From: Octopus bimaculoides
Lineage: Eukaryota
Assembly (NCBI RefSeq): GCF_001194135.2
Contig: NC_068998.1
Location: 51,624,981-51,688,980 of the forward strand
Direction of reading: 5' to 3'
Length of the DNA: 64,000 nucleotides
The notes beneath the pieces are model-generated. The model was not told where the DNA came from and ran no database searches. It worked only from the letters and a program-made list of their open reading frames with translations. The translations under genes and the position numbers were made by a program. The number at the start of each line of letters is the position of its first letter. The stretch's first letter is position 1. Shown here in pieces: positions 3,124-29,704 of this stretch.

Positions 3124-4024
3124 GCAGTGTATTTTAACAGAAATATGGTTACAAAAGGCTTCAGCCTATTGAACGAATGCTATGGGGAAGCTGAAAAATC
3201 TGGGATGATACAAAAATATTTTAAGTGAAGTTTTCTAGTTTGTATATTTTGCTGAGTGATCTAGGGATTCATGTCATTGTTTCTCACAGTCTATCAAAGT
3301 TGATTTATTCATTTGAGAGTTCTTTGCCATTTACAACAGCATTGTAAATTTATGAAAATGACATTTACTTTGTGGTCAAAAGCTTTTCCAATATTATTGA
3401 GTAAATTTTTTCCAGGGAAATGAAAAAATACCAGGAATTTTCTTTGCAGCTTTAATTCTTGTTAAACTACCGGTGACAGAATACAGTGACCTTAAAAAAA
3501 AGATACTTGAAATAATGATTCCGCATATGTCAGGTCTTTTAGCTTTCAGTTTCTTTGATTGATTCTTATCCAAAATTTCTTTTAATTTCCTTTCATTCGT
3601 TTGTAATTTAATTTTAGTTTACAGTGACATGTTTTCCACCTGTCAACAGTATAAAATTAATGTTGCCGGTGTGGCTGTGTAGTAAGACCTTCTTAATCAC
3701 ATGGTTCTAGGTTCAGCCCCACTGCATGGCACTTTTGGACATGTGTCTTCTACTGAAGTCTTGTGAGTGTGGATTTAGTAGATGGAAACTGAAAGAATCC
3801 AGTTATATTTATACATACACATATCTATCTGCATGTGTATGTGTGTGTCTTTGTGCCTGTGTGTCCGTGTGTTCACCACCACTGCTTCATTTTCTATCAT
3901 CTTTTATTCATGTATACACTTCATTGTTATATTGGTACCTTTGTCACATCTTGGTATCTGCAACCTTCCAAGAGAATGCTATTTTTACTTCATGGTTACT
4001 TTATGAGATTCTTTATCTGGGAAT

Positions 4025-4814
4025 TTAACCCTTACAAACATCTTCAAAAGATACAGATCTCTCTTGAATCTGAAGATCACAATCTATACTTTGAAGATAA
4101 ATTATGGCAAAAATTCTACCTGTTCAACATGTATGGCATCAGGTGTTGTATTATTGAACAGTGATTTTTTTGCCTTTGACATTTCAAAGACTGTGTATCA
4201 AAATGAAACTAGAGTTAAGAGAAATAAATTAATTTTGCAATTTCATTTGGCAAATAATGTGTTTGTAACCTTCCTCTTTTTTTCTTTTTTTTCTCTTGGC
4301 ATTCTTTGTCATTCTGGACATGGATTCCGACTACAGGAACCCAAAGAAATGATTCATCTGTTCACAAAAATTATCATTGGAAACATCACTGAGAGATACC
4401 ATAGAGTGTTAAACCTCCCCACCACCACCACCACCACCACCTTTAGTTAGCTCTTCTACCATAATTTGTTTATACAGAAAATTTCCTATACATTTGATTG
4501 TATAAATTCTTTGAGCTTTTCTCATTATACACAATTCAATTTAGGCTGGTTATTACATTCATTCTAAAAAATTCTGTAAAGTATATTTTTGTCCATTTTT
4601 TTTTTCTAAAGTAAACTATCCATTTATTATATTTTTTTTTTTTTTTTGTCAGAGCTGAGAAATTAACTCAGCGTTACCAAAGAACAGAAGCAGTAAACAA
4701 AAAAAATGGCGTGTTTCTTGACACTCCACATTGGCCAATCTCTGTCATTGTTGTGATTCTTGTCTTTAATCCTTCTGACACCCATGACTGCTCCTGGTTC
4801 TATGGTACCAATTA
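4025..4814 (-). CDS. Speculative exon chain of a - strand gene (4814-4678, 4330-4270, 4190-4120, 4069-4025)
   Basis: Each piece is AG-flanked and open, the first three end at GT, and phases chain 1-0-1-0 to TAA at 4027-4025; AATAAA about 120 nt downstream. The GTTACA donor is weak and the last intron is only 50 nt. Confidence 0.25.
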
Positions 4815-6432
4815 CTGTTTGAAAATAATCTAAATTAAAACTATCCATCAACATTCCAATTTAATTTATGCCCCAAACACCGACTCAATAACGGCAGTTA
4901 GGCAGTTATGTTAGTAAATCATTTGATATTTTCAAAATTAATTGGAACAACAGCTTTGTATTTCACTAAAAATACAGTAACAAAAGGTTAAATAAGTCAA
5001 CTGGAAAAAGATTGCTGTTCTCTATCACTTGGAAATGTTTTTAACAAGGAAACTCATACTTTCTATGCACATTTTTCATTATTTTCTACATTTCTTTGCA
5101 TCAAATGTCCAGTATCAAATCTCTATACTATGTCGTTGATATGTTCTTTTTCATAATTTAGTTTTAAGTTTGTGGTGTTGTATTCATTTCTGTGTTGATT
5201 CTTTAGGTGCTGTAGATGACTCAGACATTTTGTTTTTAGTTTCTTCATGAGTAGAAGGTTCAGCTTTTCAGCAGCAATAAGTAGCAGCCATGTCTCCCTA
5301 TAATATCCTCTGTAATCACACATGATGCAACAGATCATCATCACCATCATCATCATGTTCTTTTTTCCATAATTGCTTTGGTCAGATGGAATTTGTTAAG
5401 GAAGAATTTCTATAACCAGGTACCCTTCTTGCTGCTCTTTCTGCTCTGTTTCCAAGCAGGGTAGTATTCCCCCCCCCCATGAGCAGACATGTTTTCGTGG
5501 AAGATTACAAATGAAGGGATCACTTATATACCAGTAATGCTCATTTACAACAGTCATGTGACATCAAAATGAGGAGACACACAACGAATTTCTTTCAGTT
5601 TCTATCTACCAAATTCAAATCCACAATCCTCCGCTTGATCTTTGGCTGCACTAGAAAAAAGATACTTGTGCCAAGGGTTATACAGTAGGACTGAACTTAA
5701 AATCACATGGTTGGCAAACAAATTATTCAACCATGCGTGCACCTTGCCAGAAAATTGTAAAACCATTATTTTCCTGCCAAACCAAGTTAAATAAATTTTA
5801 TCAATCACTCCCATCTTCATTAAAGCTACTGATAAAGCCCTTGAGAATCTAGCTTCATTGCAATTCTAAATATATATATCAAAACGAGTCCATATATTTA
5901 TTTATTCATAGCCAACACTGTATTAGCACTGTAGTAAGTTTTGTCAGGCCATTAATCTTGTACCATTAATTAAACGAGATACCTCAGACTTAACTTTCGT
6001 TCACAATTTGCTAAATTGTCTTCTGTTACAATTATAGACATTTTGGGAATGTATGTGTGGATGAATCTTGTTAAATAACAATGGAAATTGTTTAGTTGAG
6101 CCAAGCTGACAGAAAAAGCCTTCATGGTCTTTAATTCACATTGTCATCATCATCATCATCAGCAGCAGCAGCGTTATTAATGTCCATCATTTTAATGTCC
6201 ACTTTTGCATGCCTGCATGTGTAAGACGGAACTTGCTGAAGCAAATCTTTTTGTTGCCGGATGTCCTTTTTGTTACTGTCCCTCACTTGTCTAAGCAAAT
6301 AATATATTTTCTGTGGTAGACTGGAAATGAACTACACTGCTTGTATGATGGTGATGCTCATTTACAACCATCATGTGATCTTAAAACAAGAGCACACACT
6401 AACATACACATGTATGTATATATATATATATG

Positions 6433-7985: not shown

Positions 7986-8699
7986 AAAGTAACATGTGAA
8001 ATTTCTTGCATTAAAATGGTATTTTCTGAACTTGGACATCAAGAAGTATGGCTAAACAGAATCCTTTTATTGCGGGAATAAAAGATTTCAAATTTTGCAA
8101 ATAACAAATTCTTGTAAATTTAGAAAATGACTTCTCTCTTATGAAGAAGTTTTAAAGAAATCTTTGCTACCAACGTCTGGAATCTCCATGTAAAGTCTAT
8201 AGATGTGTTACTCAGTTGTCAGCAGATATACTATAGAATACTTATAAGTGGTCTTAGGAATCATTATATGCCATTCAAATTGTCAAACGATGGACATAAC
8301 TGAAAAACAACGCGTAATGGAATTTATTAGTTTATTCAGAAAGATGATATAACTGACCAGCTTTTATTTTTGAAGGAACTTGAAACGAGATGCTTGTTAA
8401 GATATTTTTGGAATTGCAGGCTCATATTTCACATCTGATAGAATATTTTGGAGTGTGTAGGAATTTGCATTGATAGAGCTTGAAATATTTTTGATATTCT
8501 CAGCAGTTTGTAACTTTGACAAGAAACGTGAATCTAAGCATGGTTATAATTTATTATTTCATTCACTGTGAAGTTCTCATAAATAAGAGCTTAAACAGTG
8601 AATTGCTGACTGAATGGGACAATGCTGTTCCTATGATCAATGTAATGAAGTCTCTAAAAAAATTGTATCGTTATATAGCTATAACTTTATATAACCCTA

Positions 8700-8915
8700 A
8701 GGCAGAAGGCCGGTAGAATCATTAGCACATGGGACAAAATATTAAGCGGCATTTCGTCTGTCTTTATGTTCTGAGTTCAAATGCTACTGCGGTCAACTTT
8801 GCCTTTCATCCTTTCAGGGTTGATAAAACAGGTACCATTGAACACTGGGATCAATGTAGTTAACTTACCCACTCCCCCAGAATTGCTGGCCTTGTGCCAA
8901 TATTTGAAACCAATA
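8700..8915 (+). mobile_element. tRNA-derived SINE (family 1)
   Basis: gtagaatcattagc head, ctgagttcaaat B-box and ggccttgtgcc tail. Confidence 0.8.
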
Positions 8916-9156
8916 TCAATCAATAAAAGGCAAAAGAACAGGAGTTGCATAATCACTTTCATTAGCTTACAGCTGTTTCTCCCATAAGAAGCATTACATT
9001 CAGAGTTGTGTCCCCATGGGACATCTTATTGCTTTCTTTTGGGTCATATATGTATATCTTATATTATACCTTGACGCTGTGTGGACTGAGATTCCTGTTG
9101 GTAGGCCATTGATATTAAACAAAGTGTTAAACACTTATGATATATGCAAGTTGGTG

Positions 9157-9600
9157 CCCCTAGGGGTCAGCCACATTTAAGTGGCAATATACTTCACCTT
9201 ATTGTGCAGTTACTGTTAATACCTCGTTTAGAGAATTAACATTGCTTGTTTTCACTTTTTCGATATCAGTGAATAATTTCACTGGAAAAAGATATATAAG
9301 TTTTGCCAGGAATTAGCTTTTTCATCGTAGATCGGTGGCTATCGGACGCTGACGAAGGGAAATAACCCTGAAACTCGAGTCCGTTCGTGCTACAGATCAC
9401 GATGAGAGGGATAACTTCCCTTGGCAAAACAAAAAATAGACAGGACACAGAAGTGTGTCGATAAGCCAGCTGGAGGAGATGTCCTCCTGGGGCTAAAAGC
9501 AACAGTAACATCCACCCCTAGGGGTCAGCCACATTTAAGTGGCAATATACTTCACTTTATCGTGCAGTTACTGTTAATACCTCGTTTAGAGAATTAACAT
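9157..9600 (+). mobile_element. Retrozyme-like / Penelope-derived non-autonomous element: 358-nt unit plus 86-bp terminal direct repeat
   Basis: 9157-9242 equals 9515-9600 (84/86 identical). The interior holds a hammerhead ribozyme and several hairpins, has no ORF, and abuts a (TA)n tract at 9601. Confidence 0.8.
9335..9393 (+). ncRNA. Type I hammerhead ribozyme, minimal form with palindromic stem III
   Basis: Stem I CGGACG(9343-48)/CGTTCG(9382-87); core CTGACGA 9349-55; stem II AGGG-AAATAA-CCCT; GAAA 9370-73; stem III AC-TCGA-GT; GTC triplet 9379-81, predicted cut 9381/9382. Confidence 0.9.
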
Positions 9601-9635
9601 ATATATATATATTTTTATATATACTCATATATGTT

Positions 9636-9678
<43 letters not shown>

Positions 9679-10457
9679 TAGACATAAGTTTCATAAACTA
9701 CAAAATATAAATATCCACACCACCACATTTGAAACATACCTGTTATAACACTTTATCCCGATTTGAATGTATGTGAAGGTATTTAGAAGGCCCAAACTTA
9801 TTTCTGCAAATGTGCTAAGCGCTGGTGCTGATCATAGTTTAATCAATAAGTGTAGGAGCAAGGTAAATGTAGTAACAATAAGGGGTCAGTGGGAGCTACA
9901 TTTAAGTGGCCCTTTAGAAATTAAACCTCCTTATGATACTCACTGGAAGTTCATGATATGAAATTCATTGTCATTGCTCCAGTTTGGTCATCAATGCCAT
10001 GTATTTAGTTTAAAATGCAGAAAAAATAGGTGAGGGTTAGTGGGACACTTAGGTGGCCCTTAAAAAAAATAGACCCCCTTAGGATATTCCCTAGGATTGG
10101 GGGAGTTGCTGGTTTGAGTTTCGTTGTCCTTGCACCAATGGATTAGGAGGAGTTAACAAACATAAAAACATAATGGATAGAGAAACATCACTCAAATTTA
10201 TGATAGGACATACAAACACACACAAACATACATATAAACAGGAGAGAATTGTAGTTCGGTTGAAGCATTGTGTATTGTTTGTAAAGAATAAAAAGTTTTG
10301 AATCGTACAACAATGCAATAATTATAAACGTTGTGGTGTCATCAGTCATCCTGACAAAATGAAAACACTCAAAGGTTTGTGGAGCTTGATCACTCACAAA
10401 AGCATCAATACATTAATTAAATAAGTGATTAACTCCATTCTTGGTCACTAGTGCGAA

Positions 10458-10600
10458 GGTGCGTGGCTTAGTGGTTAGGGCATTCAGCTCATGATCGTTA
10501 GGTAATGAGTTCAATTCCTGGCAATGCATTGTGTCCTTGAGTAAGTCACTTTATTTCCCGTTGCTCTAGTCCAAATCGGCAAAAATGAGTGATACCTGGA
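10458..10600 (+). mobile_element. tRNA-derived SINE (family 3)
   Basis: A-box TGGCTTAGTGG (10464-74) and B-box GAGTTCAATTCC (10507-18), followed by gtgtccttgagtaagtcacttta. Confidence 0.75.
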
Positions 10601-11856
10601 TTTCAGAAGGTTAGATTAGAGATCAATGAAGTATGGTAGCATCTTTCATAGGCATTGTTGGAGTTGATAACATTTGCTCAAAACATTGCATAGCTGGATT
10701 GAACTCAAAACCATTTGGTTGCTCAGTAAAATTCTTAACCAAACTGTCAAACCAATGTCTACATGAGAAGTTTTGCATATAATTGAATACAAAGCTTTCT
10801 ATAAAGATACACACTAATATACATGTGTATGTGTGTGTGTGCTTTTGTGTCTATATGTTTTATTGTGTCTGGGGAGAGCATATACATACATTCACCTACA
10901 AACACACACTCTCTCTCTCTCTCTCTCTCTCTCACATAAATACAAATCTCTCATTTCTATTTTCAGTTAGAAATTTCAATTTGTCACTTAAAAGATAGTA
11001 TCATTTATCAAAAATGATGCTAGAATTGAATTTTAAAAATATTAAGAAAGAATGATTTCCAGTGTATTCTAAAAAACAAAAAGCTAGAATAAAAACATTA
11101 TTATTATTATTATCATTATCATCATCATCATCATCATTATTATTATTATTTAATTTTTGATTTATGTTATTTTTACTTCAATGAATTTTTTTGCTTCTCT
11201 GATAAAAATCTTTGATTATTCCAAAACTTAAATTAAAAGAACTGAAAAATATCTCTCTTACTTTTGTTCTTGTTCTTACTGCTGAACTGAAGAAAGAGGA
11301 TTTTTTTTGTTTTTTTAATATTTTTCGTCTATCAGGAAGAAAGAATTTACTAATTAAAAATTATCTATATATTGCATAATTTCTGATTAATATTTTACAG
11401 TTTTTAATTCTAATTAATTTAATTGAGAAGACCCAGCAACTAAAGTGAGATTGCAGACATAGCCGGTGTTAGTGTTGCATGTCCAGCTCATTTAAGAGTG
11501 CCTTTGATGCGTTGGGCAATATGGTATGATATGATATGCTTGAAAAGACCTGTTGAGTCAAGTAAAACCAAAATCGTAGCTGTGACCAGCGCCCCCTGAC
11601 TGGCTCTCATTCCGGTGGCATGTAAAATACATCATTCGAATGTAGTCAATGCCAATGTCCCCTGACTGGCTCCTGCACTAGTGGCATGTAAAAAGCACCA
11701 TCCGTATGTGATCGATGTCAGACCCACATGAACGGCCCCTGTGCCGGTGGCACGTAAAAAGCACCCATCCATGCATACATGCATGCTTCCATGCAGGCAA
11801 CATATACGTGTTATACCATGTTATGTTTACTTTGTATTATATATATACGGCTGGAA

Positions 11857-26219: not shown

Positions 26220-26332
26220 AAGAGCCGTTTTAACGATGCGTCCTGCCCAACTCTTCGAAACGCCGGTGTTAAAACGGGGGTAGCTGATAAAGGAAAATGT
26301 TCTCTATGTGGCTTGTGTGTATTCTTTATTAT
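26220..26332 (+). mobile_element. Dispersed repeat, possibly PLE-related; second copy on - strand at about 60530-60695
   Basis: Shared aactcttcgaaacgc...agctgat(a/g)aagga(a)aatgttctctatgtggc in both copies, each beside (TA)n or a gap. Confidence 0.55.
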
Positions 26333-26830
26333 NNNNNNNNNNNNNNNNNNNNNNNNNNNNNNNNNNNNNNNNNNNNNNNNNNNNNNNNNNNNNNNNNNNN
26401 NNNNNNNNNNNNNNNNNNNNNNNNNNNNNNNNNNNNNNNNNNNNNNNNNNNNNNNNNNNNNNNNNNNNNNNNNNNNNNNNNNNNNNNNNNNNNNNNNNNN
26501 NNNNNNNNNNNNNNNNNNNNNNNNNNNNNNNNNNNNNNNNNNNNNNNNNNNNNNNNNNNNNNNNNNNNNNNNNNNNNNNNNNNNNNNNNNNNNNNNNNNN
26601 NNNNNNNNNNNNNNNNNNNNNNNNNNNNNNNNNNNNNNNNNNNNNNNNNNNNNNNNNNNNNNNNNNNNNNNNNNNNNNNNNNNNNNNNNNNNNNNNNNNN
26701 NNNNNNNNNNNNNNNNNNNNNNNNNNNNNNNNNNNNNNNNNNNNNNNNNNNNNNNNNNNNNNNNNNNNNNNNNNNNNNNNNNNNNNNNNNNNNNNNNNNN
26801 NNNNNNNNNNNNNNNNNNNNNNNNNNNNNN
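26333..26830. other. Assembly gap (N)
   Basis: Run of N. Smaller gaps at 36470-36479, 43608-43652, 57302-57350 and 58856-58931. Confidence 1.
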
Positions 26831-26831
26831 N

Positions 26832-26870
<39 letters not shown>

Positions 26871-28925: not shown

Positions 28926-29031
28926 GTAAAATTCTAAAGGCATTTGGAGCCCTCTTAACGCTATATATAGATCAACTCATACCCAATAATTTGTCTCGGT
29001 CCAGTTTCTCTTTGAGAACTGTTCCGTGTAC

Positions 29032-29704
29032 NNNNNNNNNNNNNNNNNNNNNNNNNNNNNNNNNNNNNNNNNNNNNNNNNNNNNNNNNNNNNNNNNNNNN
29101 NNNNNNNNNNNNNNNNNNNNNNNNNNNNNNNNNNNNNNNNNNNNNNNNNNNNNNNNNNNNNNNNNNNNNNNNNNNNNNNNNNNNNNNNNNNNNNNNNNNN
29201 NNNNNNNNNNNNNNNNNNNNNNNNNNNNNNNNNNNNNNNNNNNNNNNNNNNNNNNNNNNNNNNNNNNNNNNNNNNNNNNNNNNNNNNNNNNNNNNNNNNN
29301 NNNNNNNNNNNNNNNNNNNNNNNNNNNNNNNNNNNNNNNNNNNNNNNNNNNNNNNNNNNNNNNNNNNNNNNNNNNNNNNNNNNNNNNNNNNNNNNNNNNN
29401 NNNNNNNNNNNNNNNNNNNNNNNNNNNNNNNNNNNNNNNNNNNNNNNNNNNNNNNNNNNNNNNNNNNNNNNNNNNNNNNNNNNNNNNNNNNNNNNNNNNN
29501 NNNNNNNNNNNNNNNNNNNNNNNNNNNNNNNNNNNNNNNNNNNNNNNNNNNNNNNNNNNNNNNNNNNNNNNNNNNNNNNNNNNNNNNNNNNNNNNNNNNN
29601 NNNNNNNNNNNNNNNNNNNNNNNNNNNNNNNNNNNNNNNNNNNNNNNNNNNNNNNNNNNNNNNNNNNNNNNNNNNNNNNNNNNNNNNNNNNNNNNNNNNN
29701 NNNN
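29032..29704. other. Assembly gap (N) immediately downstream of the promoter cluster
   Basis: Run of N; may hide a first exon. Confidence 1.

Follow-up and report, generated by a model that had tools for sequence, protein, structure and literature searches.

Short, non-coding genomic elements that carry hammerhead ribozymes are already known in mussels, corals, and salamanders. Those of the mussel Mytilus galloprovincialis, called retrozymes, have 350–390-bp units and comprise ~5,000 hammerheads (Cervera & de la Pena 2020, PMC7229834). Here, we describe an element on the plus strand of Octopus bimaculoides DNA, at positions 9157–9600 of a 64-kb window (the whole stretch of DNA that was analysed, to which all coordinates refer), that is probably a retrozyme-like, Penelope-mobilised, dead-end copy. 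It shares with the mussel retrozymes a mollusc host, a unit of similar length (358 bp versus 350–390 bp), and low GC content; each is non-coding, has a single type I hammerhead in the unit, exists in thousands of copies, and has an RNA with a high degree of self-pairing. Mussel retrozymes, however, are demonstrated tandem repeats with abundant circular RNA (up to ~1% of total RNA; PMC7229834), whereas the octopus locus has 1.24 units, a weak RNA signal, and a mosaic unit, one module of which also belongs to a much larger family.

Penelope-like elements form partial tandems with pseudo-long terminal repeats (pseudo-LTRs) and inverted truncated copies, and several of their clades favour (TA)n targets (Craig et al. 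2021, PMC8557442). The octopus element resembles them in its partial head-to-tail insertion, inverted truncated copies, (TA)n target preference, and hammerhead association (PMC8557442; Cervera & de la Pena 2014, PMC4209133). Unlike them, it has no open reading frame (ORF) for a reverse transcriptase (RT) or GIY-YIG domain, its helix II is the canonical 4-bp form rather than the minimal variant, and in this copy the ribozyme lies outside the repeated part. Plant LTR retrozymes are likewise non-autonomous, use hammerheads for RNA processing, and are thought to move via circular RNA, but they carry type III hammerheads in true LTRs, have a primer-binding site (PBS) and a polypurine tract (PPT), measure 600–1000 nt, are rich in GC, and depend on Gypsy elements for their mobilisation (Cervera et al. 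2016, PMC4918200).

Two further groups are similar in design. The short helix III of the newt and axolotl type of ribozyme works best as a dimer of two ribozymes (PMC4209133). The satellite-2-type retrozymes of these animals (330–350 bp) have, like the octopus element, a type I hammerhead with a very short helix III and a palindromic tetraloop; unlike it, they form long arrays of up to ~10^5 motifs with proven linear and circular RNAs, and the sequences are unrelated. Sm-alpha elements of Schistosoma are SINE-like (SINE, short interspersed nuclear element) and, as is the octopus element, dispersed, high-copy, short, and non-coding, with a hammerhead of the active type and a similarly A-rich loop 2 (AAAUA). 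Sm-alpha has a tRNA-like head for RNA polymerase III; ARAGORN found none in the octopus unit. The Schistosoma hammerhead elements are also mentioned in the literature on metazoan hammerheads (PMC4209133).

An earlier note on this DNA had claimed a retrozyme-like architecture of 1.24 copies of a structured 358-nt unit, flanked on one side by a (TA)n tract, and the layout is as claimed. Two 86-nt direct repeats, 84/86 identical and 358 nt apart from start to start, enclose 272 nt, and the locus therefore consists of the last 86 nt of a unit followed head to tail by a whole unit (Table 1). Both differences between the repeats are C/T (9198 C versus 9556 T; 9203 T versus 9561 C). At both sites, copy 2 has the base seen in 93–98% of family genomic reads, so both changes, one of them at a CpG, arose in copy 1. 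A repeat divergence of 2.3% points to an insertion that is young, though not brand new, with an age that by the octopus repeat clock of PMC13282606 would be very roughly a few million years. The 3' end abuts a microsatellite in which Tandem Repeats Finder (TRF) reports (AT)38.5. The unit falls within the size and composition of metazoan non-LTR retrozymes (150–450 bp, GC <45%, non-coding, and without LTR, PBS, or PPT), and its partial-tandem, pseudo-LTR-like layout on a microsatellite target is that described for Penelope-like elements (PMC8557442). The claim that it is CpG-rich in CpG-poor surroundings is true: its observed/expected CpG ratio is 0.82 versus 0.23–0.63 in the 3-kb flanks, but this is not extreme, as 14% of 358-nt windows across the 64 kb reach the same value. 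By BLASTN, the unit has no further copy within the window; the search gave only a 17-nt motif at 9894–9910.

Table 1. Features of the octopus element and its borders, in window coordinates; the last two columns give the depth of genomic reads at two likeness thresholds, with the exact span measured in brackets where it differs from the feature
Feature	Position	Strand	Basis or remark	Depth at >=85%	Depth at >=97%
11-nt stretch GCAAGTTGGTG	9146..9156	+	between short ATATAT (9140-9145) and element		
Direct repeat copy 1	9157..9242	+	terminal 86 nt of 5'-truncated upstream partial copy, pseudo-LTR-like; holds both private changes		
Complete 358-nt unit	9243..9600	+	42% GC, 13 CpG		
Segment	9211..9267			4,000-4,900	not comparable (bins differ)
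Hairpin CAGUGAA-UAAU-UUCACUG	9267..9284	+	sequence, circular fold		
Linker				~430 (9306-9324)	~8 (9292-9321)
Long imperfect rod extending helix I	9295..9430	+	9295-9333 pairs with 9396-9430, circular fold		
Type I hammerhead domain	9323..9405	+	sequence, fold, descriptor scan		
Ribozyme core	9344..9381			~6,800	~100-210 (ribozyme segment 9337-9426)
Catalytic core and helix II	9349..9373	+	CUGACGA, AGGG-AAAUAA-CCCU, GAAA		
Helix III palindrome ACUCGAGU, 8 nt, perfect	9373..9380	+	other copies: AUCCGGAU		
Module A	9442..9580	+	common to a far more abundant repeat; hairpins 9444-9459, 9472-9487, 9528-9543	~29,000 (9477-9533)	~10,000 (9442-9576)
Other hairpins	9444-9459; 9472-9487; 9170-9185 (= 9528-9543)	+	sequence, minimum-energy fold		
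Direct repeat copy 2	9515..9600	+	3' end of full unit; family-majority base at both repeat-differing sites		
(TA)n/(TG)n microsatellite	9599..9677	.	TRF; adjoins 3' end; presumed target		

The evidence for a ribozyme begins with the motif itself. Helix I is formed by CGGACG (9343–9348) and CGUUCG (9382–9387), 6 bp, and beyond an internal loop continues in a distal stem of 10 bp (9323–9333/9396–9405). The core sequences CUGACGA (9349–9355) and GAAA (9370–9373) frame helix II (9356–9369), in which AGGG and CCCU make 4 bp around the loop AAAUAA. Helix III has only 2 bp, A-U (A9373–U9380) and C-G, closed by a UCGA loop, and the triplet GUC ends at 9381, so that cleavage is predicted after C9381, between C9381 and C9382. 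The conserved core is thus complete (CUGANGA, GAAA, the A15.1–U16.1 pair, and an NUH triplet), and the helices fit the canonical metazoan type I hammerhead, with 6 bp in helix I, 4 bp in helix II, 1–2 bp in helix III, and a palindromic loop of 2–4 nt (PMC4209133). A descriptor scan of both strands of the window returned this one hammerhead, the number claimed in the earlier note, where 0.003 sites are expected per 64 kb (mean of 300 first-order Markov simulations). The domain (9318–9410, 93 nt) folds at -38.7 kcal/mol (z = -5.0), and the unit folded as a circle reaches -122 kcal/mol (z = -7.4 for the plus strand and -5.3 for the minus strand). The four hairpins named in that note all exist, and all are present in the minimum-energy fold.

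Variation among the copies of the family argues that the motif has been under selection. After 9373, 2,129 genomic reads from other copies have UCCGGAUACGUUCGUGC, and at single sites of helix III the reads show C for T at 9375 (62%), G for A at 9378 (68%), and A for G at 9379 (54%). The window's palindrome and its counterpart in other copies (ACUCGAGU versus AUCCGGAU) differ by four changes, yet both are perfect palindromes of 8 nt; the base at the cleavage site varies from C to A and so remains H (non-G). The same helix III variant is encoded in an O. bimaculoides UniProt entry, which reads NVSG where the window has NGLE. In helix I, a G>A change at 9345 replaces a G-U pair by A-U. Helix covariation is seen in both helices, on the basis of read-level variant frequencies and one protein-coded copy rather than an alignment of full copies. 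That the palindrome is kept through four changes argues for selection on pairing of the ribozyme as a dimer, because complementarity at the ends of a nominal loop makes sense only if two ribozymes pair through helix III. These substitutions argue for a helix III suited to pairing with a second ribozyme copy, a dimer mode that is known for hammerheads with a short helix III and a palindromic loop (PMC4209133).

The ends of copies are of interest in the same respect. A joint from 9381 to 9600 is present in 26 RNA reads, and a loose end, GCCTTTATATATTTATA after 9381, is found in RNA and in 23 DNA contigs; in some family copies, then, the sequence stops precisely at the predicted cut and TA-rich DNA follows. 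Such ends would be the expected trace of retro-copied, self-cleaved RNA, and they are suggestive only. Further loose ends, at 9247, 9545, and 9560, run into TA-rich sequence. The ends at C9381 are indirect evidence of self-cleavage, which may occur in vivo.

The family is large. Depth was measured on ~1.93 Gb of raw genomic reads, or ~0.7x coverage if the genome is ~2.8 Gb, the size reported for O. vulgaris (PMC13282606), at likeness thresholds of at least 85% and at least 97% (Table 1). At least 85% likeness to some part of the locus is found in 0.22% of genomic reads, and the family comprises ~10^3–10^4 copies; the element is therefore not single-copy (single-copy status was part of what, according to the earlier note, would have refuted its reading) but belongs to a multi-copy family with a highly self-paired RNA. 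The sequence is present in many DNA and RNA runs of one species and in several runs of related species. Exact-pattern scans of metagenome and viral contigs found neither the ribozyme core nor the palindrome that flanks module A elsewhere (see below). Non-identical contigs that stem from other copies (9166–9254, 9204–9291, 9260–9375, 9274–9410, 9379–9465, 9466–9568, and 9509–9598) tile the 358-nt circle at every adjacency, the closing junction 9600->9243 among them, and read depth rises to a smooth peak over 9242/9243. In thousands of copies the closing junction is therefore an internal one, and position 9600 is no terminus of the family.

Our reading, held with moderate confidence, is that the 444 bp are a dispersed insertion of a very abundant short non-coding hammerhead family of the metazoan non-LTR retrozyme or non-autonomous Penelope-like kind. 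A strongly self-paired, non-coding unit of 358 nt and 42% GC with a canonical type I hammerhead has the retrozyme-like architecture that had been proposed for it. The partial head-to-tail copy, the (TA)n target, the variable 3' ends in AU-rich places beside TA-rich DNA (9247, 9545, 9560, and 9600), and the inverted truncated copies together make up the Penelope signature (PMC8557442), and many joints between opposite strands occur among the family reads. Animal retrozymes co-occur with Penelope-like elements and resemble their pseudo-LTRs, monomer copies are common, and retrozymes have been argued to be non-autonomous Penelope derivatives with many monomer offspring (bioRxiv 10.64898/2026.07.22.740005). 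Penelope elements are active in octopus (PMC13282606).

Under this reading, an RT, most likely that of a Penelope-like element, would have primed from nicked TA-repeat DNA at an AU-rich site inside the RNA (…AACAU) and then copied more than one unit length (1.24) of its template. Three templates would serve, namely a multimer that had escaped cleavage, a circle closed by religation, or two RNAs linked through a template jump, and the sequence does not discriminate among them. The earlier proposal that the RT had run more than once round a circle is in this respect too specific, because its product is indistinguishable from that of an uncleaved multimer or of the template jump proposed for Penelope pseudo-LTRs. 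The proposal that the locus could not itself release a monomer agrees with what we find: with one ribozyme, no neighbouring copy, and a helix III that needs a partner, no unit-length RNA can be released, and the copy is a dead end.

The same features bear on a different origin, in which the locus is what remains of an autonomous Penelope-like element, as a pair of pseudo-LTRs whose interior was deleted or as a copy that was truncated, and does not belong to a dedicated non-autonomous family. Pseudo-LTRs do carry hammerheads and retrozymes resemble them, and the partial tandem layout fits. The 272 nt between the repeats, however, hold no RT or GIY-YIG ORF or remnant of one, as an autonomous element would have; the same short circular order recurs in many other copies; and the hammerhead is of the canonical retrozyme type, not the minimal type with a long helix II found in metazoan Penelope elements. 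We consider a remnant of this kind quite improbable. The 86-bp repeat might instead have formed in the DNA once the element was in place, by replication slippage, by unequal exchange between neighbouring repeats that contain module A, or by a rearrangement associated with the microsatellite, and with no RT running past the unit end; this seems to us very unlikely. Module A is so abundant that partners for ectopic exchange are plentiful, diverged motifs similar to it lie 270–450 bp downstream, and the locus sits on an unstable microsatellite; against this, the 9242/9243 boundary matches precisely a junction that runs uninterrupted through thousands of copies, a coincidence that head-to-tail copying does not need. 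A long target-site duplication as the source of the repeat was rejected, since 9442–9514 and repeat copy 2 together make one intact module A.

Several observations weigh against the retrozyme-like reading, and they concern the motif, the structure of the family, and the RNA. As to the motif, the Rfam hammerhead models gave no match at the gathering score, nor at E<=10 on either 1.4 kb or 98 nt, and the first pair of helix II is A-U where G-C is usual. Position 9350 (U4 of the core) is C in 79% of family reads at the lower threshold and in 39% at the higher; a U4C core is reported to cleave far more poorly in vitro and yet to be viable in a viroid (PMC3088659). Since C>T at CpG is a favoured mutation, the canonical U4 of the window could be secondary. 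The silence of Rfam and the non-canonical majority core are what might be said for the view that ribozyme motif and hairpins are chance features without RNA function. That view is, in our estimation, barely credible in the face of the 0.003 sites expected per 64 kb, the fold z-scores of -5 to -7.4, the double compensatory changes in helix III, and the copies that end exactly at the cut site.

As to the family, the 358-nt unit does not hold up as a homogeneous family unit: it is a mosaic whose segments differ ~100-fold in copy number. Module A belongs mainly to a much larger repeat family; elsewhere, it is mostly flanked by a palindrome made of AGGTTCGTCCATCGAT and ATCGATGGACGAACCT that is absent from the window. 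No contig spans the full unit (358 nt, against reads of 150 nt), and accordingly nothing points to large homogeneous arrays. The 86-nt repeats flank the ribozyme and do not contain it, and no RT or endonuclease ORF of at least 110 aa exists in the 64-kb window.

As to the RNA, RNA-seq reads of the family make up 0.004% of the total versus 0.22% in DNA, a 54-fold under-representation; the two read directions are equal and the profile tracks DNA copy number; and no pile of read ends is seen at 9381/9382 in RNA-seq. This pattern fits passive read-through of thousands of copies. Poly(A) selection, if it was used for these libraries in place of total RNA, would lose circles. Short reads over the closing junction are uninformative on circularity, because the 1.24-mer locus itself contains that junction. 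No excess of A>G changes in RNA over DNA, and so no sign of editing, was found.

Read-through of this sort is also what would be expected if the locus were a composite of ordinary octopus SINE-type repeats moved by a long interspersed nuclear element (LINE), such as an element of the microsatellite-targeting Dong/R4 or RTE lineages active in octopus, with the ribozyme as a passenger or relic, like that of Sm-alpha in Schistosoma, and the 86-bp repeat produced by a template jump of the LINE RT or by nested insertion. SINEs are the largest class of repeats in Octopus (11.6% of the O. vulgaris genome), 893 recently active families are listed as ‘unclassified SINE’, and Dong-R4 is the most active LINE (PMC13282606). 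The very different copy numbers of the modules, the occurrence of module A mostly in other contexts, and one copy that ends beside (TAA)n point in the same direction. Yet neither a tRNA-like head, the mark of a tRNA-derived SINE (ARAGORN, 8000–11000), nor a poly(A) or LINE-like tail is present, and no B-box-like string was seen by eye in the unit. Covariation that preserves the helix III palindrome argues for a selected ribozyme and not a relic, and partial tandems, inverted truncated copies, and a (TA)n target are together the signature of Penelope. We therefore regard a LINE-driven composite as rather unlikely.

Module A and the repeats around it merit description in their own right. Thousands of near-identical copies of 9453/9464–9545 have the flanking palindrome, 30 nt long and perfect, on both sides, and copies of module A are often joined to inverted copies at variable points. 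Within the window, 9868–9940 and 10020–10095 are two diverged copies of another repeat, which share the motif GGGGTCAG…ACATTTAAGTGGC with module A and in which the GCCAC/GUGGC hairpin is kept via changed bases (GCUAC/GUGGC and GGGACAC/GUGGCCC). This stem-loop may be common to several octopus repeat families.

Other multi-copy repeats flank the element at 8934–9001, 9059–9115, and 9700–9870; all three occur in RNA runs as diverged contigs or reads, and 9059–9115 in DNA runs too. The element was therefore inserted in repeat-dense DNA. The 11 nt that separate it from the short ATATAT upstream may be junction filler, and no clear target-site duplication is visible around the element. The (TA)n/(TG)n microsatellite also accounts for artefactual, sub-threshold Rfam matches at 9623–9691 (mir-297, mir-466, and mir-1277). 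Runs of N at ~26,330–26,860 and ~29,030–29,700 are assembly gaps, the window being taken from a gapped draft assembly.

That the unit has no ORF is not literally correct, but the claim survives in substance. A mechanical ORF of 81 aa lies on the minus strand at 9266–9511; it is not conserved, and we rejected it as a gene because other copies commonly have indels that break the frame (1, 5, and 12 nt). Its sole relative at the protein level is the UniProt entry A0A0L8IHK6_OCTBM, a 54-aa ‘uncharacterized protein’ of O. bimaculoides that is 83% identical to it and evidently a spurious gene model placed over another copy of the repeat, one with the common 12-nt deletion and the variant helix III. 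The contig index has no record for either the window ORF or A0A0L8IHK6_OCTBM.

Our search of the literature brought up no paper connecting cephalopod repeats to hammerheads or retrozymes, and to that extent the suggestion of an undescribed cephalopod family is sustained. Elements of this kind are nonetheless familiar, and octopus repeat libraries surely contain so abundant a repeat already, filed under a different name and probably among the unclassified SINEs. Octopus genomes have undergone a huge lineage-specific burst of short repeats; most of these are listed as tRNA-derived or ‘unclassified’ SINEs, and ribozymes are not mentioned (PMC13282606). It is a speculative and, we think, unlikely extension of our results that a sizeable part of this octopus-specific ‘SINE’ expansion is a modular, hammerhead-bearing, Penelope-mobilised retrozyme superfamily cycling through self-cleaved and possibly circular RNAs. 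If it were so, module A with its conserved GCCAC/GUGGC hairpin would be a handle for the RT, and the U4/C4 polymorphism of the core would tune cleavage.

For the single locus the consequence is small, as it is one copy and probably inert. At the level of the family, hammerhead-bearing units in their thousands would bring cephalopods within the range of the retrozyme/Penelope system and would give a mechanistic handle on part of the burst, namely on which RT is used and why insertions land in (TA)n. Small structured or circular RNAs might also arise from them, in an animal known for heavy editing of double-stranded RNA.

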